Assembly: GCA_000320545.1 (NCBI GenBank)
Contig: ADNK01002586.1
Coordinates: forward strand, 1-33,984
DNA length: 33,984 nt
Direction of reading: 5' to 3'
Source: Bigelowiella natans CCMP2755
Lineage: Eukaryota; Protista; Cercozoa
This document shows positions 95 through 32,263 of the stretch, in pieces (within the stretch, counting starts at the first letter, position 1; every line of letters starts with the position of its first letter). A model generated the notes under the pieces. It searched no databases. It saw nothing but the letters and a program-made list of their open reading frames with translations, and was not told where the DNA came from. Position numbers and translations under genes: made by a program.

Positions 95-3000
95 CTACTT
101 AGTACGTATGTTAGCGTAGAACTTCTGGCAACATGCCAGTGTCGGTGTTCGCCCTATAGGTTTAGTCAATATATCTGCAGGTTGTTCCTTGCCAGATATA
201 TGATATAATCGTATAACGTCATCACGTATGAGTTGTCTAACGTTATGGTACGCAACTCTTATTGACTTAGACTTCTTTGTAAAGCCAGGGTTGGTGGCTA
301 TTCGGATGGCAGGCTGGCAGTCTTCAAATACAGGTATTTTCATTAATATTTTCTTGTTAGGCTCGAAGCCTAATTCTTTAACTAACTGCGTAGCATATAC
401 TATATCACGCCCTAGCTGAGACATACTCATGTATTCAGCTTCGGCTATGTGATTAGCTACCACAGTCTGTCTGTGTGAGCCGTATAATACAGGGCCACCG
501 CAGAACTGTAAGAAGTAACCTGATCTGCTTTTGCCATCCTTCTCAGTCATGTGAGTGGCATCGGCGTATCCCTCGAAGCCTCGCTCAGGTCGGTTGTAGC
601 ATATTTTATAGTGTTTAGTATTTAGTAAATACTTCATAACCCTATACGCCATTTTCAAGTGGCTTTCCCTTGGGTCCTGCGAATGTACTGCCAGTAGCGA
701 TAAGGCCGCGACTATGTCCGGTCGTGTAGCTACTGCAACGTATAAACAGGCACCAATGACTGACCTAAATAATGTTTGATCTACTTTAGGTTCACTGCTA
801 CAGTCCTTCCTTATATCCATCGGAATCGGAGTCCGGGCGCGCTTAGAAGGTAAGATTTTAAATCTTTCACACATCTTCGTGATGTATTTTTCTTGACAGA
901 CAGAGTAACAACCTCTGCTGTCTCTTTCTATCTGTAAACCTAAGCACTCTTGCACTGGGCCAAGATAGTGCATTTCGTATTCCTTCTTTAAATTTTCAAC
1001 AACGTAGCCTTTATCTTTCTCGTTTTGAAAACATAAAAGGGTATCGTCTACGTAGATGCCCACTATGACTTTTCTATCTTCTCCTCTGTCCAACACAAAT
1101 AAGCATGGGTCTGTCTCCATTTGTTTGAAACCCATCTTAGTGAGAGACCTCACGAATGTTCGGTTCCATATGTATGCTGATTGCTTTAGACCGTAGATAG
1201 ATTTATTTAACTGACAGGCTGCATTAGCCCTGTCATTCATAATCTCTTCTTCTTGTTTACTCCTACAATCTCCTTTTTCTAACCCATCAGGTATCTCAAG
1301 GTAGACATCGGCGTCAATCTGGCCGTAGAGGTAAGCTGTACGTATGTCTATGTTGTGTATCATTAGCTTGTATCTGGAGCACAACGCTAATAGTATACGT
1401 AGAGATGCCTGTGAGAGAGTCGGTGCATACGAGCGAAACCATTCAACGCCTCGGCGTTGATCGAATCCTCTTGCCACCATACGAGACTTGTAGCGAATAG
1501 ACCCGTCAGGGTTTAGTTTCTTTTTAAATACCCATTTAGTAGAAACTAACTTACCTTTCGGTCGTCTAACTATATCCCATGTATGTCTCTTAACTAACGA
1601 TCTAATTTCATCCTTTATTGATGGTAACCAATACTTCTTCTCAGGTCCAGTAACAGCCTCGCGGAAGGTTTTAGGTATGTCTAATATATCATGTACAGAC
1701 ACATCAACATCCTTTAATATAACCTCCCCGGTGCTTTGATCAAGAGCGGCGAACATACGTTCCGCCGTTTTTATCTTGTCATATTCTAATCGTGGATGTT
1801 TGTACTCTTCAGCGAATAAGCTATTGCCAGCATGGGCAACAGAGGTAATACACTGCTCTTCATCCTGCATGGCCTGAAAATCCATTAGAGCATAGACGCC
1901 GTAGTTAAGGCCTATCATCGCCGGAGGCACGTTCTTATTAGATCTCTTAGAGACTCTAGTAGGTAGTTGAGGTGCCTCCTTACGCTTATGCTTTGCTTTG
2001 TCTATCTCAGGCGCAGTTGAAGAACTCATTCCTCCCGTGGATATCGGCAGCTTTATAGGTAAAGGTAACGTAGTGTCTGCTCTCTCCTCACTATCATCCT
2101 TCTTAGTATCGATGGTAGCTGATGATGATGATGATGACATCGCATCTATCTTCTTAGCGAGAGTACTCAGCGTATCATGTAATGATTTAATAAAATCCAT
2201 TACACTAGTAATGTTTGTACTAGAAGAAGATTCTAATTCATCTCTCTTCTTACTCGCAGGAACCTCGCCTTTATCCATCTCGACATCAGAGTCCTCAGGA
2301 TCCCGATATTGAGGTAACTGTTGTCTTAGAGTAGCAGAGCGAAACACACTTTGATACCACTTATCCACATTCGCTTTTTCTATGATTTTACCGGTATCGG
2401 TACTGACTATGTACGTGCCATGTCTCGTATCATATCCGAGCATGCGTACATACTGTCCAGTATCCTCTAACCGTGACCTTTTGCGCAATTGTTTATCCAC
2501 CGATAGTACACCGATACAGCCAAACACCACTAAATTACTCAGGTCTGGCTTCTTCTTGTAATAGAGCTCGTAGGGAGTCTTCGTGTTATCGGCAGAGTGA
2601 GGTATTCGATTCATAGTGTAGATCACATAATCTAACGCGTAACACCAATACCGTAACGATATACCGCATTGCTTTATTATCGTACGTATTTTAGTCGTCA
2701 CCGTTTGTATCGCTCTCTCAGACATTCCGTTCTGTTCTGGCGTTCGCGGCGTACTAGGATTAAAGGTAATACCGTTCTTGTCTAGAAATTTCTGTAGCGA
2801 AGTAGCCGTAAATTCGGAGCCATTATCCGAACGGAATTCTACAATGTGCGACCCGTATGCGTTTTTATGCTTGCGCAATATACTGCGCGTAAGCGCCGGT
2901 ATTTGCGATTTCTTTTTAGCCTTAGCCGCGGTTATTCTACGTGTACCTTCGTGTACGTATACCACGAAGTACTTGTAACCGCGCACGCTACGCATTAAGC

Positions 3001-4912
3001 TTTTAGTGTCCGCGTGCATACGTTCGCTTTGGGCCGAGGTTGCTCCTGGCACACCTCGCCTTGCGCGTTTAGTGTTAGTCATATCACATGCTGCACAATT
3101 TATCTTTTTCAACTGATTAGGAGTTTTTAATCCAGTTGAACATTTTGCAACTTGTGATATTTTAGGTCGATTATAGTGTAGCAGCTTTCTGTGAAGCTCC
3201 ACGGTATCATCCATTTGATTATAGACCTGATCGACAGTACACTCAGGTACTTCGACACCACACGATACATCAATATCATATGACTGTATGTTGGTTGATT
3301 TTCTATTGTTGAGCATATTATGATTATCATCCAATACGGCATGATATAATCGATTTTTCATCTTGAAATGCATAATAGGCTCATTGTTTTTGAATACCAG
3401 GGTCTGGCCATTCGCGGTTTCTATACGACAACCGATTCTATCAATCTTTGATTGGGATATACAAGACAAAGAAGAATCAGGTGAGTATAACACTCCACTC
3501 AGCATTCCCCTTTTCTTTTTACCCGAGGGGAGTACGAAAGTTATTGGTACTCTCCCCTTGTGTGTTGCAGTATGGGTAACACCCTTCTTGCCAACACTCA
3601 CTTTTCTTTTATTCAAGAGAGGGAGTAGGTGAGAGAAATATTTTTTATTATTGAAAATGTGCGTAGTTGCACCATTATCAAGTATTATTAGATTTTTAGT
3701 ATCACATTCCGTGCTCTGCATGTAACAACCTCTCCCGAATAAATCATCTTCGTCCTCTGAGGAGCCGTATTCCTCATATTTTTTATTCTTTGTTTCCTGC
3801 TGCACGTACATCGCCTCCTTCTTACTCTTCTTATCCTTTTTACATTTTTCTAGGACGGCGTTGTACTGCTTCTCGGTCAGGTCGTCAATGTAATAGCATT
3901 CGCGTGCATAGTGTCCTTTCTTGCCACACGAATAACATACCACATCCTTTTTCGCCTTTTTGTGATTATTCTGCTGATCCTTTTTGTGATTATTATTGTA
4001 GGATCGCTTCCTTCCACCACGCCCTCGGCCTCGGCGTCCGCGTCCTCCTCTACCGCGAGAACCGCGCGACCCTCTGCCTCGTCCGCGCTGGTAATAATTA
4101 TTATTATTATGATGATACTGGTTTCCCTGATAATTCATCATTTCTTGCGCCGGACGCTTTCTAACGTAAATCCTCTTTACTTCTGCCTGCATGTGGTTCT
4201 TCTCCTGTCCGTCTCTATTAGTAGCCATCCTTTTAGCACTGAGTAGATCTCGTAGCTGTTCCATGGTATCTTTTAGTTTTTTATTGTTAGCCGTAGCCAG
4301 GCTATACACGATAGCCTTATATTTCTTCTTTGGTTTTAACCCATTTATGAAACAGGTTATCTGCATCTGCTCGCTAACAGGCTGGTTCGCGTTGGCCAGC
4401 CTTCCGCAGATGGTAACGAATTTAGAATAATATGCCTCTACGTCGTGATCGAAATTTTCGATGGAGGCTTGTTGTAGGCTACTATTCAACTCATGCATGG
4501 ACGCGTTATCGGTAGGCTTGAACCTCTCCGTTAGACGAGCCCAGGCGACAGCTGCAAGGCCTCCGGAGTTATCGAGTAGGTGTTGGTGGGCGGAGTGTAC
4601 AGTTAGACAAATCGCGGCGTAGGCCCTCACATTGGCCTCATCGTCGGCGCTCGTAGCAGGTACACCTCCGCGCCAGATTTTAGCTTCGGTCTCGCTAATC
4701 CGGGCCACCTCCCTGCAGTACTCCGGATTCTTAATCACGTTGATAAGTTTCGCCGGCCTGTTAGCCGTGGTCGATGGTTTCGCCATTTCGAAACAATCGA
4801 TCATGTTTTCGGCCGCGAAAACAGCTTTCATCGTGAAGGCGTAATGGTTGAAGTTGCTACCTGACCTAGTCAGGTGAATCTTGGCTTTGCTCAGAAAAGA
4901 CAACTGGGACAT
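95..4912 (-). CDS. Copia gag-pol polyprotein (~1605 aa from the first ATG; the ORF track starts at an upstream GTG at 4948)
   Basis: Gag (AWARLTERF...CFINGL), RGG tract, zinc knuckle CYSCGKKGHYAREC, protease IILDNGATTHIF, integrase (HRKLLH..CAAC; MHADT, RSDNGSEF, PEQNGMSER), RT (WVFKKK, YKSRMVARG, LNKSIYGLKQS, IYVDD), RNase H (YADA, AEAEY, QPADILTK). No internal stops or frameshifts. Confidence 0.97.
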   Translation of the reverse strand: MSQLSFLSKAKIHLTRSGSNFNHYAFTMKAVFAAENMIDCFEMAKPSTTANRPAKLINVIKNPEYCREVARISETEAKIWRGGVPATSADDEANVRAYAAICLTVHSAHQHLLDNSGGLAAVAWARLTERFKPTDNASMHELNSSLQQASIENFDHDVEAYYSKFVTICGRLANANQPVSEQMQITCFINGLKPKKKYKAIVYSLATANNKKLKDTMEQLRDLLSAKRMATNRDGQEKNHMQAEVKRIYVRKRPAQEMMNYQGNQYHHNNNNYYQRGRGRGSRGSRGRGGRGRRGRGRGGRKRSYNNNHKKDQQNNHKKAKKDVVCYSCGKKGHYARECYYIDDLTEKQYNAVLEKCKKDKKSKKEAMYVQQETKNKKYEEYGSSEDEDDLFGRGCYMQSTECDTKNLIILDNGATTHIFNNKKYFSHLLPLLNKRKVSVGKKGVTHTATHKGRVPITFVLPSGKKKRGMLSGVLYSPDSSLSCISQSKIDRIGCRIETANGQTLVFKNNEPIMHFKMKNRLYHAVLDDNHNMLNNRKSTNIQSYDIDVSCGVEVPECTVDQVYNQMDDTVELHRKLLHYNRPKISQVAKCSTGLKTPNQLKKINCAACDMTNTKRARRGVPGATSAQSERMHADTKSLMRSVRGYKYFVVYVHEGTRRITAAKAKKKSQIPALTRSILRKHKNAYGSHIVEFRSDNGSEFTATSLQKFLDKNGITFNPSTPRTPEQNGMSERAIQTVTTKIRTIIKQCGISLRYWCYALDYVIYTMNRIPHSADNTKTPYELYYKKKPDLSNLVVFGCIGVLSVDKQLRKRSRLEDTGQYVRMLGYDTRHGTYIVSTDTGKIIEKANVDKWYQSVFRSATLRQQLPQYRDPEDSDVEMDKGEVPASKKRDELESSSSTNITSVMDFIKSLHDTLSTLAKKIDAMSSSSSSATIDTKKDDSEERADTTLPLPIKLPISTGGMSSSTAPEIDKAKHKRKEAPQLPTRVSKRSNKNVPPAMIGLNYGVYALMDFQAMQDEEQCITSVAHAGNSLFAEEYKHPRLEYDKIKTAERMFAALDQSTGEVILKDVDVSVHDILDIPKTFREAVTGPEKKYWLPSIKDEIRSLVKRHTWDIVRRPKGKLVSTKWVFKKKLNPDGSIRYKSRMVARGFDQRRGVEWFRSYAPTLSQASLRILLALCSRYKLMIHNIDIRTAYLYGQIDADVYLEIPDGLEKGDCRSKQEEEIMNDRANAACQLNKSIYGLKQSAYIWNRTFVRSLTKMGFKQMETDPCLFVLDRGEDRKVIVGIYVDDTLLCFQNEKDKGYVVENLKKEYEMHYLGPVQECLGLQIERDSRGCYSVCQEKYITKMCERFKILPSKRARTPIPMDIRKDCSSEPKVDQTLFRSVIGACLYVAVATRPDIVAALSLLAVHSQDPRESHLKMAYRVMKYLLNTKHYKICYNRPERGFEGYADATHMTEKDGKSRSGYFLQFCGGPVLYGSHRQTVVANHIAEAEYMSMSQLGRDIVYATQLVKELGFEPNKKILMKIPVFEDCQPAIRIATNPGFTKKSKSIRVAYHNVRQLIRDDVIRLYHISGKEQPADILTKPIGRTPTLACCQKFYANIRTK

Positions 4913-4952
4913 GATTGCTCGTAATTCTCGTTGGTAAACTTTTCTCACTTTG

Positions 4953-26108: not shown

Positions 26109-27541
26109 AAATGCGATTCATATCCACTTGATTCATATCCACTTCTCCTCAATTCTCGTACGTTCTAAGAAAGAATACTGGGGAACGATGATTATCAGCC
26201 GATCGTGTGTGCCCATATTGCTTCTGAGCTAAAACTTTAGATAAGTTATTTTAGATAAGTTCGTCGTCGTACAATCGTCGTGAACAGGAAGACGACTCTC
26301 ACCGTCGCGACTTAGCAGGGCCAAGCTAGATGTGTTGTGTATGCTTTTAAATCGTCGTAAAACGTGGATGTTATTGTGCGGATAAAATAGCAGTTTGCAG
26401 GCGCACAATGGTGCGTGGTAATGATCAAAGCTAGCTCCCTTCGCAATAGCAAAGTGTAGAACAGCGTTCGTAGTCTGCCAGCATGTACGCTCAGTTTGCA
26501 GCTTGTGACACCGTGCTGTGCGTGCTCGTATTGCACTGAATCATGCCAGCTGCGTTGTCACGTTCTGTGCGCGGCTAGGCGGGCTGGCATTACCATCTAG
26601 ACGTCGATCGTGACCACTTGTTTGTCACGTGTCATCATACGCATGTGTGCATGTCTATCTAGCCATGATGAGGCCATCTTTTTGCCCAAAGCAATAAGAG
26701 TTAGTATCCCCATTCAGTGTTGGACGACACAGCAGAAATTGAGCACTGCGACCGCTACTTTATTTGTACAGCTACGCTAGTACGTACATCAAAGGATGAC
26801 CATATATGTTGGGAAAAATAAATGTGTTCATTGCATCCGTCTCCCACCTAATAGCGACCACGCAACGTGCATAAATGCCACACCTTGAGACGCGCAACGT
26901 GCGTAGCACACACATCGTACGCATCATGCGTGCCACATATCCGCGATGTGAGCAAATGCACACAGCAGTCCATGCATGCTAGCATGGCGGAGCGCACATG
27001 TCTAGTAGGCACACTACTAGCTGAAGCTAGCTAGCTAGGGCTAGCCTGCTAGCGCTATGCACGTCTATCCATCAATAGGGAAGCCCAAAACAATCTGGTA
27101 GCGCACCGTGGGCCTCCTAGCCTCTAGGCCTACGGATACAAATGCAGTCACATTTATGTAGAGAGAGCATGCGAGAGGCTTTGGCGGAGATCCTAGCATA
27201 CCTTGTTATAGTGTCGAAATGGGCCTGAATTTTTGTTTTGTTGGATCAGGAACAATGCAACTGGCATGTGCACATTTAAATATGCCGTACTAGATGTATA
27301 CATACGGTACGTCAGTATGTCAAGAGCGTGATAACATTTGAAATTGATTCCATCGATTGTTGCTAATGCAGTTAAGACATGTCCATCTAGACATTGTATA
27401 CGCATGATGCGGCTTTAGTATGATGTACATGTTGCGTGCATTCCCCTTCTCATCCGCAGGCGTAAGCTATACTACCGTGCGTTTCTATCGTCCTCGTTAC
27501 TCTGTTACTTTATTGCCAGGTCGGGCAGCTTCCTCTGCTGT

Positions 27542-30203
27542 TCAGAAAGATCCACGTACAAAACTTGGTCTTGATTCGTCCACGAAGTTTCCAAAAGCAG
27601 AAGTTACGTTAATATCAGGAGTCAAATGATCACTCCGACCAAGTTTAGAATCCCCATGGTTCACGACGGATGGACGACGAGCAATTTTCGAGGATTTCGC
27701 AAACCTTTTCCAGCAAAGAAAGACAAGGCGCATCTGTAGACCTTGCGAGCTTTGAACTTCTCTGCGGAAAATTGCTTTACATGGCAGCCCAGCCATGAGT
27801 TGCAACTCCTTATTTAAAAAGCTATTCATTAATTCCTCAGTATGCCGAGACTTTTTGCGGACGACCGAAATCAATCTGGCCATGAGCTTGCAGCATTCTG
27901 GAGGTAGGAACGGTACGTGGTGAGTATCGGTTTTCGCAGAATCGACAAAGCATTTCTTTTCTTCATGCCGCTGCTGCCCTTTCGACCCCTCCTCCTCCTC
28001 CTCATCTTCCTTCTCCTTTTTGATGGACAATGAATCCACACAACGCTCTATCTGTTCGAAGCTTCTGTAGGCGTCGGTAACGAACCAATGCAGAGTCTCA
28101 ACGAAGTCTGTCGCGACTTCAGGACCACAGTGCCTCAAGCGGGCGCTGTCTTCTGAAAACTCTTCCGGCCCATTCGGTCTATGAAGGGTTTCCTGATACT
28201 CCGAGTTCTTTCTGGAGATGTTCACGGCGACGATGGTGATGGGAATAGCAAGGCAAACGATGGATATAAACAGGATGTAGCTACTAAGGATACGCCCCGG
28301 AAGAGACGTCGGGTAGAGGTCACCGAAGCCTACAGTGGTAATGGTAACGACCATCCAATAGAAGGTGTCAGGGATAGACCGGAAGGGACTTCTCTCCTTC
28401 ATTCCATAGAAAGTCTCTCTCTCGTACATATTCATTTCTTCGCTCCACGTGCCCTGTTCGCAATAAAATATTATACTACTGCAGAAGATGGTCCATCCAA
28501 CCAAAACGACCCCGAAAGACACGAGGGGAACAAGCGAGGCATGTAATGCTTTTGTCAGGATCTCCAAGTTCTTCAGTCTCTTGAATAACCGAATGAGTCT
28601 AAGTAGGCGGAGGAGACGTACGACCCGCAGAAATGAAATGTCTGGGATAGTGGTGAACCTCTGGATGTAGAATGGGATGGTTGTAAAGAAGTCTATGATT
28701 GTCATCGGATTGAGCATCCAGATGTACATTTTGTAACAAGCGGATGGCTCTCTTCCGTTCTCATCTTCTGCAACGTCGTAGTAGCACCGTCGAAGAAATG
28801 CGCTCCGGGTGAAAGGCACGCTCAAGGAGCGACACGACAGCTCTACCGTGAATATTGCCACTACTACAGTGTCGATTATGGAAAATACAGGGGCTGTATC
28901 CCCGTCCTTGCTGCCGTAGTTTGGGTATCTATACTCCGGGAGCGACTCGGTTAACACAGACATCACGGATGTTACCACTGCAACTCGCACGAGCCATTGT
29001 AGGATTTTGCCGATTAATCCAGGATATTCATCTTCCCAAATCTGAAATGTCTTCTCCATGAAATTCCCCTCTTTAGGGAGCCAAAGTATTGGCTGAGAGG
29101 GTGGCTCTCTAGTGCCCCAAATCCGCATGGACTGCTTTCGTCGCAGCATCACGTGATACAATATCGACTGCGCCTTTGCCTTTGATTCTACTCTCCTATT
29201 CTCCCAAGGGTCAATTTTGTGGGTTACACTGGTTTTGTTGCTATTATCATTATTGACGCTACTGCTTGCATCGCTGCTATCATGATAGGACTCGGGGCTT
29301 TCTTCCATTTTACGTCGCTCCTCATCGCGTTCATACTCTCTCAAGAAGACATTGGTTACCACTGTGATGGGAATAGCGAAGAGCACGAGTGAGCAGATCA
29401 TGATTATGCATCCTGTCGCTCGGCCTTGTGGAGTGCTTGGGGCCTATTGAGCCAGATATGGCAGTAGTAGCAGCAGCAGCAGCAGCATAGGGATATAACT
29501 AAATGAGGAGTTGTGCGTTTGTGAAGGCATCTTGCTGCCTAGATAGTGAATCACCAGGACGTAAATTGTCTACTTGTGATAGTACAACGGCAAGGCGGCT
29601 TTCAAAGGCACATTTCTCTCTTGTCGCACCCTGGAGCGTAAAGCCGTTAATTTTTGTCCCACCGTGGTAAAGCGGAACAAAAATCATCGAGCATTTCCGT
29701 GCTCCAAGGATGAATAAAACACTAATATCTTTTTGCATTCTATGCATGCGCTATGGCACTACCATATCTCCATAGCCGACTGTGGTAAAGGTCTGGATCA
29801 CCCACCACATCGAGATGTACACCGAGGTAAATGGTGTAGGCTAAGGATGAGGGAAGACTTCTCAGTAAAAATGGAGATTGATGGTGAAAAATACATGGGG
29901 AACCGAACCATCTATCCAACTTCTAATGAAAAGAAATTCGCGATAGGAAATTTCCACTGAAGTATTCACAAGCTTTAAAATCAAAAAACTTAAGTAGTAG
30001 ATTATTCTGAACCGTCACAGATTCTTGACAACCCTTCCATTACACATTACAACCTACCTCTTTTTCGCCAAAGACGTTCTCACGGAGAAACTTCTCACGA
30101 TCAGAATCATAGACTCCTTCTTCGCACACGTATATGAAGCATGCGGCTATCAAGACGAAGACCAGAAGCAGCATAAAGACCTGATCAGTAGTGGTAATGA
30201 TAC

Positions 30204-30234
<31 letters not shown>

Positions 30235-31968
30235 AATTATAATCGCCCTCCACTATTGCAAAAACACATATAGGATGCGTAGAAAGCTTTTTCGCGAAGT
30301 TTTATCACGATTTGCAGTCGTCGTTCAAACTTGGAATGCCTTAAAGCAGGAATTATATGATGCAAAGCACCAAAATACCTGAGAAAGCATGTCAGCAGCG
30401 AGATACATAACGTTAGCAAGCAGCGGGATCATCCGATTTTCCCTGAACAGCTTCACCAGCCGAATCAATCTGCACAGCAGTGACAATCAATTAGAGAATT
30501 AGAACCCATCATACGCGGACATATGCTCATATCAAAGAGCAAGGGCAGAATAAGAACAACCGACAAGTTATAATTGACGAGTAAAGCAGCTTCTATCACC
30601 ACTACGTGGCGCAAAAGTTTAGGACTAATCGCGCTTTAAATTCTACTTGGCTAGCAACACGTGCGATTTCCGTGTGATTGGGTTGATACACTGTTAGGTT
30701 TTCGATCGTAATTGATCTTTCCGACCATCTGATAAAACGACACAACCTGCCTATCCTCAAGCTTGTAAGATTTATTGACTCCCCAGTTGCATTCTGAAAA
30801 AACACCATATACGGCAGCAGTGCATTTGATGAGACTGCTACGGAATAGCTACAGAATAAATAGCTGGCACGCGCATAGGTCTTGTGCACTATTCTATCGA
30901 ATCTGCTGGGTGTATGTCCAATGTTGTTCTCTAGACAAAACTTACTTCAAGATAGAAGGGCAAGATGGCAATAAGATCGATAATGTTCATTGGACGTAGA
31001 ATGAAGACTGCAGTTTTGTCCAAATGTACTTGAAGTTTTGGTGATATGCACGAAGAAAGGCATCCATTAAGAACGTAAAGCTCTTTTTCCTCCTCCCCCT
31101 CCTCTGGTGGTCCATACTCGCTGTAATCGATGGGACCCACTATCTTCTTCATTCGCCACACCCCAGTTATGATGTAGAGATAATTTGCAGAACTTGCAGT
31201 TAGCAGTCGCAACACATACTCTATAGTGAAAAAAATGGTGCATCCCATCTCTATCATGTCGAGCGCGGGTGCCGTATCGTTCTCTTCAGATCCGTATTTT
31301 GGGTATCGATACTCTGGAAGCGAACTAATAAGCTATCACGCACAGTAATGGAACATACCATCAGCCGATCAGCAATTCTTTTAAAAAAAACAAGAAAATT
31401 AACAGCACACCAGCTGTCATGTCACTTTCCTTTTTCCCTCGAGAATAGGTACAAAATTGTGGTGCATATTAGAGGCAAAAAAACTTCATCATGCAAATGA
31501 AAGGACGGTGGTACCAGAACTATGGTTGAAGTGACTACCATCGCTGAACTGTGCATATATGTAAATATATGCAGTGAGAAGAATTAATGAGAAGAAGCAA
31601 TGAGAAGTTCAGTTCGCGAAACGGAAAAGCACATTTACCTTAGAACAGAAAAAAAAACTGAAATGTAAGAGGAATTGTTGTCATCGACGACTTGAAACAG
31701 AAATAATCTAAATGTGTGGGCCTGGGGAAACCTGGAAGGAAAACACATATTAGTCAAATGAAGAAGAGGATGATATCCAACTATTACTACTCTATGTTCC
31801 TATCATCTCTCATTACCAAGGTTTCCTAGTTTCTATCTGAAGATTTTTGACAATTGCAGATTTTCCCTCTTGGGATTTAGAATGCGAATCAAGCCCATTG
31901 GTGATGGGACTCATTGGAACGCTCATGGGCTGCCCGGGCAGCGGTTCTCGGGCGTCCATCTCTTTCAT
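27542..31968 (-). CDS. Tandem two-domain (2 x S1-S6) voltage-gated potassium channel, ~970 aa, 9 exons
   Basis: Domain I: IFFTIEYVLRL (S2), PMNIIDLIAILPFYLE (S3), SLRIGRLIRLVKLFR (S4), MWWVIQTFTTVGYGDM (pore), LVLFAIPITVV (S6). Domain II: IFTVELSCR, PMTIIDFFTTIPFY, FLRVVRLLRLLRLIRLFKR, YWMVVTITTVGFGDLYP, CLAIPITIV. All 8 GT-AG introns are phase-consistent. Domain I S6 and domain II lie in the same uninterrupted exon (29443-27542). Confidence 0.93.
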
Positions 31969-32263
31969 ATTTCCCCCTATTTCTTCACCATCTCGCTTTA
32001 TATATAACCCTCTTTTTCTATTATAACGAGTGGAAGCCCCTCATATGAACTGGAAACTGGGGAATCTGCGCACACAGGGGGTGGGCATGACCATCCCTGC
32101 ACGTGTAGCTGTATTCGAGCGTTTCGGATATGTTTCTGCGGATCTACTGCCCGGTAATGGCCGGGAAATGAAATTTAACAAAATCACCGATGATTTTTAC
32201 CTTTTTTGGAGCTCTCCTGCTCATTTAATCCATTTTTGCCTCAGTAAGATCAATACCGACCAA

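Follow-up and report, generated by a model that had tools for sequence, protein, structure and literature searches.

The locus considered here, on the minus strand of contig ADNK01002586.1 of the chlorarachniophyte alga Bigelowiella natans CCMP2755 (assembly GCA_000320545.1, positions 1 to 33,984; 'the window' below means the whole of this 33,984-nucleotide stretch), raises the question of whether two voltage-gated potassium (Kv) channel modules, each of six transmembrane helices (6TM), are naturally joined in a single expressed polypeptide and, if they are, what kind of channel such a polypeptide would build. An earlier note, made from the sequence alone, had claimed that two complete Shaker-type S1-S6 modules share one reading frame here, and that the join could not be an artefact of the splicing model because the end of the first module, the linker and the second module lie in one exon. 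Our gene model, profile matches and transcript evidence agree with both claims. That the gene really exists in the nuclear genome of B. natans and is expressed, and that it belongs to a wider family, is virtually certain; that the best explanation also holds as a whole, namely a real and expressed tandem Shaker-type Kv-like subunit working by the mechanism proposed below, we consider very likely.

The window is eukaryotic in character: its GC content is about 43%, and its introns are short and bounded by GT and AG. A manual model, built by reading the minus strand in three frames from 32100 to 27500, divides the channel gene into nine exons (31968-27542), with GT-AG borders at all introns and consistent phases. 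The coding sequence (CDS) is 2907 nucleotides long, or 968 codons and a stop; it opens with an ATG at 31968, and 27542 is the final base of the stop codon. In its last exon one frame stays open for 633 codons (29443-27545) and holds the S6 helix of the first repeat, a linker of about 80 residues, the whole of the second repeat and a C-terminal tail of 213 amino acids. Two of the introns contain trinucleotide microsatellites, ATC in intron 6 (window about 30245-30200, minus strand) and GCT in intron 8 (about 29490-29465, minus strand), and both are spliced out according to the transcript described next.

Full-length analyses were run on the database proteins P0067 or P0001, while the exons of the window were searched singly. 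A word-based protein search with exon 9 recovered P0001, an 850-residue open reading frame (ORF) from an MMETSP transcript that has the same junctions as the model from exon 4 through exon 9, and a member of its 90% cluster, P0067 (968 residues), fits the model at all eight junctions. P0067 is encoded by L017, a 3290-nucleotide intron-free contig from JGI sample 3300017192 in which the ORF is uninterrupted. Aligned with the window by blastn, L017 falls into nine collinear blocks of 97.3-100% identity whose ends coincide with the exon ends, and the block over exon 9 continues for 2135 nucleotides, with three mismatches and no gaps, straight through the linker. Since L017 aligns in exactly the nine exon blocks, one mRNA must span both modules; and since its identity to the window of about 98-100% marks a different strain or allele, it provides independent evidence for the model. 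To judge from this divergence, the source of L017 is a slightly different strain or allele. The encoded protein differs from that of the window at 11 of 968 residues, four of them within the first 23. At the nucleotide level about 14 to 16 positions in or near the CDS differ, so that most of the differences alter the protein. L017 therefore covers the entire CDS and both modules, with neither a stop nor a misassembly in the linker, and no transcripts with one module only came to light. The one candidate for a single-module isoform, P0066 (395 residues), was rejected, being a 5'-truncated fragment that begins inside S3 of the second repeat.

The domain content of the protein is that of a doubled channel subunit. 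Pfam finds Ion_trans in two stretches of P0067 (2.9e-63) and Ion_trans_2 likewise in two, and exon 9 alone matches Ion_trans with 3.9e-36 over its residues 146-415. No T1 (BTB_2) domain was matched by Pfam on P0067 or on exon 1, as the earlier note had said; only about 55 residues, modelled as disordered by AlphaFold2 (AF2), precede the pre-S1 helix. The same searches found no cyclic-nucleotide-binding domain (CNBD) on P0067, and no known domain in its N-terminus or C-terminal tail. The asymmetric pores that the note described are also present, with TTVGYGD in exon 8 and TTVGFGD in exon 9, where the Phe codon is TTC at 28327-28325, and both pore helices carry a Shaker-like W-W or Y-W pair.

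The voltage sensors are complete in both repeats and unequal in length. In the first repeat, exon 4 encodes S2, in which the charge-transfer motif reads F-x-x-E, then a long insert between S2 and S3, and S3 itself with the conserved Asp, and S4-I, split between exons 5 and 6, reads R-R-R-K-R, with five charges in register; S4-II reads R-R-R-R-R-K, with six charges, and is followed by further R and K. The shortening of S4-I, which the earlier note had observed in this gene, amounts in the alignment to a four-residue deletion at the end of S4 and occurs in every first repeat of the chlorarachniophyte cluster, making it a family-wide feature. Across 17 tandem proteins the invariant residues of repeat I are E121, F128 (the S2 Phe), D212 (the S3 Asp), R238 and R241 in S4, and T328-G333 in the filter; those of repeat II are F533 (S2 Phe), D586 (S3 Asp), R608, R611, R614 and R617 in S4, and T705-D710 in the filter. 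Conservation at sensor and pore positions is similar in both. On this alignment, each repeat keeps the residues of a working voltage sensor (S2 Phe and acidic residue, S3 Asp, and an S4 Arg at every third position) together with a canonical K+ filter.

The Phe variant of the filter is confined to the second repeats, where it occurs in five of 15, as against none of 14 first repeats, and on the repeat tree described below its distribution requires several independent Tyr-to-Phe changes. In the window gene GFG is derived, because both the sister paralog on contig C534 and the next outgroup, from Gymnochlora, have GYG; and it is not a sequencing error, because all three transcript-derived proteins from other strains have GFG as well.

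Coordinates of the tandem Kv-like gene and its parts in the window (UTR, untranslated region; pLDDT, predicted local distance difference test)
Feature	Position	Strand	Evidence
Minimum mRNA extent	27310..32119	-	blastn of L017 against the window, nine collinear blocks, 97.3-100% identity
5' UTR (151 nt)	32119-31969	-	L017 blocks
3' UTR (232 nt)	27541-27310	-	L017 blocks
Exon 1: start codon, poorly conserved cytoplasmic N-terminus	31817..31968	-	no Pfam match; pLDDT <50 at residues 1-47
Exon 2: pre-S1 W-F-P motif and first half of repeat I S1	31639..31731	-	57% identity to C534 paralog exon
Exon 3 (34 nt): second half of repeat I S1	31515..31548	-	model and L017 block
Exon 4: S1 end, S1-S2 loop motif (31323-31267), S2, S3	30946..31332	-	Pfam Ion_trans 1.1e-6, alignments
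Exon 5: S3-S4 loop and S4-I as far as its second Arg	30747..30793	-	gene model, P0067 match
Exon 6: remaining S4-I (total R-R-R-K-R, then E-N-R) and repeat I S4-S5 linker	30379..30469	-	gene model
Exon 7: repeat I S5 and turret (30126-30058)	30058..30180	-	gene model, alignment
Exon 8: repeat I pore helix and filter TTVGYGD (29786-29766)	29763..29840	-	Pfam Ion_trans_2 4.9e-6
Exon 9: S6-I, linker (about 29299-29063), repeat II, tail (28183-27545), stop	27542..29443	-	633-codon open frame
Repeat II S1-S2 loop motif (exon 9)	28945-28889	-	
S4-II (exon 9)	28636-28571	-	
Repeat II turret (exon 9)	28462-28394	-	
Repeat II filter TTVGFGD (exon 9)	28339-28319	-	

The gene is not alone in its genome. 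At least four tandem Kv-like paralogs are present, on contigs C1151, C534, C570 and C706, and the family members annotated in B. natans are Bigna1 83110, 82352 and 82898. The first of these, P0069 (jgi/Bigna1/83110, EP00466_Bigelowiella_natans), is 100% identical to exons on C534, and the C534 gene is a whole-gene paralog of the window gene, with the same order of exons e2-e9, 52% identity and GYG in both pores. P0007 (Bigna1/82898) corresponds to a many-exon gene of about 7.6 kb on C570 (54886-62529), and C706 carries two separate pore matches. Among the relatives retrieved, two filters are present in those from Gymnochlora sp. CCMP2014 (P0003), from Lotharella globosa (P0075) and from further NCBI, JGI and Logan contigs; the match in Amorphochlora amoebiformis (P0013) is 374 residues long and has a single filter. 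Several chlorarachniophyte genera carry this multigene family, of which the window gene is one paralog. Intron loss within the family is biased to the 3' end: the window gene and its C534 paralog (L016/L002) hold S6-I, linker, repeat II and tail in one exon, and the second repeat of the C570 paralog (Bigna1/82898) is split over at least six.

How the two repeats are related to each other was addressed by alignment and by phylogeny. In P0067, repeat I can be aligned with repeat II over its whole length, the pre-S1 W-x-P motif through S6, at 29% identity across 339 columns (E 2e-48). The S1-S2 loop and the turret stand out above this background, the 19-residue loop being identical between the repeats at 16 positions. 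The earlier note had quoted the loop and turret strings, correctly as the alignments show, and had taken them to indicate duplication within one channel lineage. The single lineage stands, given that the two repeats form sister clades (see below), but as marks of a recent or gene-specific duplication the shared motifs fail. Both repeats of every protein in the chlorarachniophyte cluster carry the loop motif S-L-P-x-Y-R-Y-P-x-Y-G...D-x-A-P and the turret motif C-E-Q-G...Y/F-E-R...F-G-E-K-E. With this distribution, and with only 29% identity overall, we rejected the idea that the S1-S2 loops are nearly identical because of a recent duplication specific to this gene or because of gene conversion; from their conservation, loop and turret motifs are family signatures, and presumably structural ones.

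The repeat tree was a maximum likelihood analysis in IQ-TREE under LG+C20+F+G4 by posterior mean site frequencies (PMSF), with support given as ultrafast bootstrap and Shimodaira-Hasegawa-like approximate likelihood ratio test (SH-aLRT), and it contained the separated repeats together with single-repeat channels; the rows P0013_s, P0002_I, P0020_s, P0043_s and P0019_s were omitted. First repeats of the chlorarachniophyte cluster form one clade (100/99), second repeats form another (100/99), and the two clades are sisters (97/94). Since both include Lotharella globosa P0009 (in the 90% cluster of P0075) and Gymnochlora P0003, and since they are sister clades, the internal duplication took place once, in one Kv-like lineage, before the sampled chlorarachniophyte genera split and before the paralogs expanded.

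The tandem proteins P0012 and P0014-P0017 form a second cluster. Its repeats are also sister to each other (93/85) and stand apart from the chlorarachniophyte repeats, and no close member of it was found in this genome. Proteins of this second cluster (P0012, P0014-P0017 and P0089, all from marine transcriptomes) have Cys-rich S1-S2 loops (C...C-E-P-x-P) in both repeats and much longer turrets. A single origin of all the retrieved tandem Kv-like proteins was rejected, an approximately unbiased (AU) test of one first-repeat clade giving a delta lnL of 55.4 and p 1e-4 for a constraint that was formulated after the tree was seen. This result suggests either two independent tandemisations or early homogenisation of the repeats.

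Comparison with solved structures places both repeats among the Shaker-type channels. In a sequence search of the PDB, Kv2.1 was the best match (1.9e-25), followed by Kv3.1, Kv4.2/4.3, Kv1.2-2.1 and Shaker, with matches on both repeats. When an AF2 monomer model of P0067, made from a 17-sequence alignment, was submitted to Foldseek, the leading matches were Kv2.1, Kv4.2, Kv1.2 and Kv3.1; their TM-scores, normalised by target, were 0.76-0.82, and each match covered one repeat. Two-pore channels (TPCs) were absent from the top 60 PDB sequence matches and from the top 50 Foldseek fold matches. Two further features are shared with Shaker-type channels at the level of motifs, the L-P-E end of S1, common even to human Kv2.1, and an S4-S5 linker that keeps the Shaker-like L-x-I-L...L-x-A-S pattern in repeat II.

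The AF2 model also gives some form to the family-specific parts. In each repeat three strands of the turret are predicted to form a small sheet (P0067 residues 291-310, at the exon 7/8 junction, and 667-686, at window 28450-28391, minus strand), and a short beta bridge is predicted in the S1-S2 loops, the extracellular loops and turrets being the parts in which the two repeats are most similar. Helices are predicted in the tail at residues 776-807, 850-886 and 891-924 (window about 28120-27674, minus strand), and an F-x-x-W motif in the tail (W913) is conserved in all members of the chlorarachniophyte cluster. This C-terminal helical tail could be a candidate assembly domain that replaces the missing T1.

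In proposing how such a subunit would work, we rely on the analogy of TPCs, of two-pore-domain (K2P) potassium channels and of engineered Kv tandem dimers. Two chains would come together as a pseudo-tetramer in which the repeats alternate I-II-I-II. The filter ring would then be made of two Tyr and two Phe strands in a fixed 2:2 ratio of GYG to GFG, surrounded by two non-equivalent pairs of sensors, one with the shorter, five-charge S4-I and the other with the longer S4-II and its six to eight charges. From their length and Shaker-like form, the S4-S5 linkers suggest that the domains are swapped; with T1 absent, it would be the covalent join that fixes the stoichiometry, and the conserved helical tail may aid dimerisation of the chains. 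The expected function would be a K+-selective conductance, activated by depolarisation, by which the membrane potential is set or restored. By analogy with these systems, such a dimer of tandems, selective for K+ and opened by depolarisation, seems to us probable.

Several points weigh against this proposal. The S6 gate motif is I-P-I and not the P-V-P of Shaker. The AF2 model is of moderate confidence only, with a mean pLDDT of 63 and a predicted TM-score (pTM) of 0.50, the transmembrane blocks lying mostly at 70-88, and alignments of Cav and Nav chains over both repeats have root-mean-square deviations (rmsd) above 26 Å. Because of this pTM and these poor multi-repeat superpositions the model is no reliable guide to how the repeats pack, and as a source for that packing it was dropped. 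Finally, filter sequence alone is no guarantee of K+ selectivity, HCN channels having GYG (PMC7576140).

Among the alternatives, the one that survives best, itself unlikely, is that no simple alternating homodimer forms, and that the chain instead pairs with another tandem paralog or places only one of its repeats in the pore. For some engineered Kv concatemers, only one repeat per chain has been reported to enter the pore. In B. natans, at least four tandem paralogs coexist (C1151, C534, C570 and C706), there is no T1 domain to enforce the choice of partner, and the inter-repeat linker is both long (about 80 residues) and modelled by AF2 with low confidence, all of which would leave room for other assemblies. 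Against such assemblies, both repeats are equally strongly conserved at pore and sensor, as expected if both contribute, and the divergence of the first repeats has gone in step with that of the second repeats, each set in a clade of its own.

It is more improbable still that the assembled channel is a non-selective cation channel, or is activated by hyperpolarisation, by virtue of its mixed GYG/GFG filter or its unequal sensors. The caveat on filter motifs just cited (PMC7576140) applies to selectivity, and, with regard to gating, the sensors differ and polarity is not readable from sequence. Against this, both filters are the full T-T-V-G-Y/F-G-D with Shaker-like W-W or Y-W in the pore helix, and the nearest solved relatives, by sequence and by fold, are Kv1-4. 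Nor is the Phe itself foreign to K+ selectivity, since GFG occurs in the K+-selective hERG, in Kir6 and in the second pore of several K2P channels.

The weakest alternative, that the tandem is an artefact of misjoined neighbouring single-module Kv genes or of an assembly error in the linker, has behind it only the generic worry that attaches to long multi-exon models and to the dinoflagellate polycistronic transcripts discussed in PMC7576140, and is in effect refuted by the unbroken 633-codon frame through S6-I, linker and repeat II, by the collinear and gap-free passage of L017, from a slightly divergent strain, through the linker, by the same layout in the C534 paralog, and by more than ten homologs from other genera with both repeats.

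Beyond the dimer of tandems itself, we offer a fuller reading only tentatively, as a possibility that has somewhat less than an even chance of being right. In this reading, the repeats would be specialised, the S4-II pair driving opening and the S4-I pair modulating kinetics or inactivation; with the pore fixed at 2:2, the Tyr-to-Phe change in the second repeat would adjust the stability of the filter or its C-type inactivation; and the tandem layout would have arisen at least twice independently within Kv-like channels. If all this were true, the family would be a natural living intermediate for the step from one to two to four domains that lies behind Cav and Nav.

One other element lies in the window. 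An uninterrupted ORF of 1617 amino acids at 95-4948 on the minus strand encodes gag, a zinc knuckle, a Pol beta-barrel, an integrase and an RVT_2 reverse transcriptase; from these domains it looks like a Ty1/copia-type long terminal repeat (LTR) retrotransposon, an intact element of the alga, and it may extend past the start of the window.

Natural tandem Kv channels are of wider interest on two counts: they fix subunit order and stoichiometry genetically, for which physiologists have needed artificial concatemers, and they represent a two-domain stage between single-domain and four-domain voltage-gated channels. The architecture class, including its unequal S4 charges, was already published in 2020 with a chlorarachniophyte example (PMC7576140), and the window gene is a further member, so that the novelty is limited. 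What this study adds is a join shown at the level of genome and exon, within a single exon; a family of paralogs within one genome; loop and turret signatures in both repeats, and S4 asymmetry, across the whole family; and the confinement of GFG to second repeats. Doubt over transcript chimeras, which attaches to evidence from transcriptomes only, is removed because the join lies in one exon and in one mRNA. The locus also makes available a complete sequence, ready for expression, from an alga whose genome has been sequenced, and the restriction of GFG to repeat II, together with the short S4 of repeat I, yields concrete hypotheses for electrophysiology.

The closest known system is the class just mentioned. 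Pozdnyakov et al. (2020; PMC7576140) described the two-repeat Kv-like architecture in silico from dinoflagellates, oomycetes and Lotharella globosa, the last from transcriptomes, and reported that first and second repeats fall into separate clades and share no more than 30% identity, that the two S4 segments differ in R/K content, that the S4-S5 linkers are long and that the filters read TVGY/FG; independent origins were suggested. Bigelowiella is not mentioned in the text or supplements of that paper, and a full-text literature search found no functional study of the class and no other paper using its term. The window gene has all of these features in common with the class (two 6TM Kv-like repeats per chain, separate repeat clades, about 30% identity between repeats, unequal S4, long S4-S5 linkers and TVGY/FG), and the Lotharella globosa tandem P0075 belongs to the same clade.

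With the Shaker-type Kv1-Kv4 channels of animals the likeness is one of the single repeat. Each aligns end to end with Kv2.1, Kv3.1, Kv4 and Kv1.2, and shares the L-P-E end of S1, the S2 F-x-x-E, the S3 Asp, the S4 Arg triplets, the Shaker-like S4-S5 linker and the TTVGYGD filter (GFG in repeat II). However, Kv1-Kv4 channels have one 6TM subunit per chain and four chains, whereas the window protein has two subunits per chain and no T1 (BTB_2); and it differs further in its S6 I-P-I where Shaker has P-V-P, in the long S2-S3 insert, in a turret predicted to form a sheet, and in the family-specific helical tail.

The resemblance to TPC1-3, by contrast, is one of topology, two times 6TM. TPCs assemble as dimers into a pseudo-tetramer whose voltage sensors are not equivalent, and they lack the K+ signature, whereas both filters of the window protein are of the K+ type; and since, inside the Kv-like group, neither of its repeats has a closer relative than the other, its tandem originated separately from that of TPCs. 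K2P channels (4TM/2P) and the fungal TOK channels (8TM/2P) likewise have two pore loops per chain and build a dimeric, pseudo-tetrameric K+ pore, and in several K2P channels the first pore has GYG and the second GFG. K2P channels are without voltage-sensor domains, and TOK, with eight transmembrane helices, has one S1-S4-like module, whereas the window protein has two full S1-S6 modules with the gating charges conserved in both. The CNGK channels of sea-urchin sperm and cnidarians are natural K+-selective chains of four 6TM-CNBD repeats (PMC7576140); they differ from the window protein, with its two repeats and no CNBD, in repeat number, in their cyclic-nucleotide-binding domains and in belonging to the CNBD branch, but they are its analogues in the natural concatenation of 6TM units in one polypeptide.

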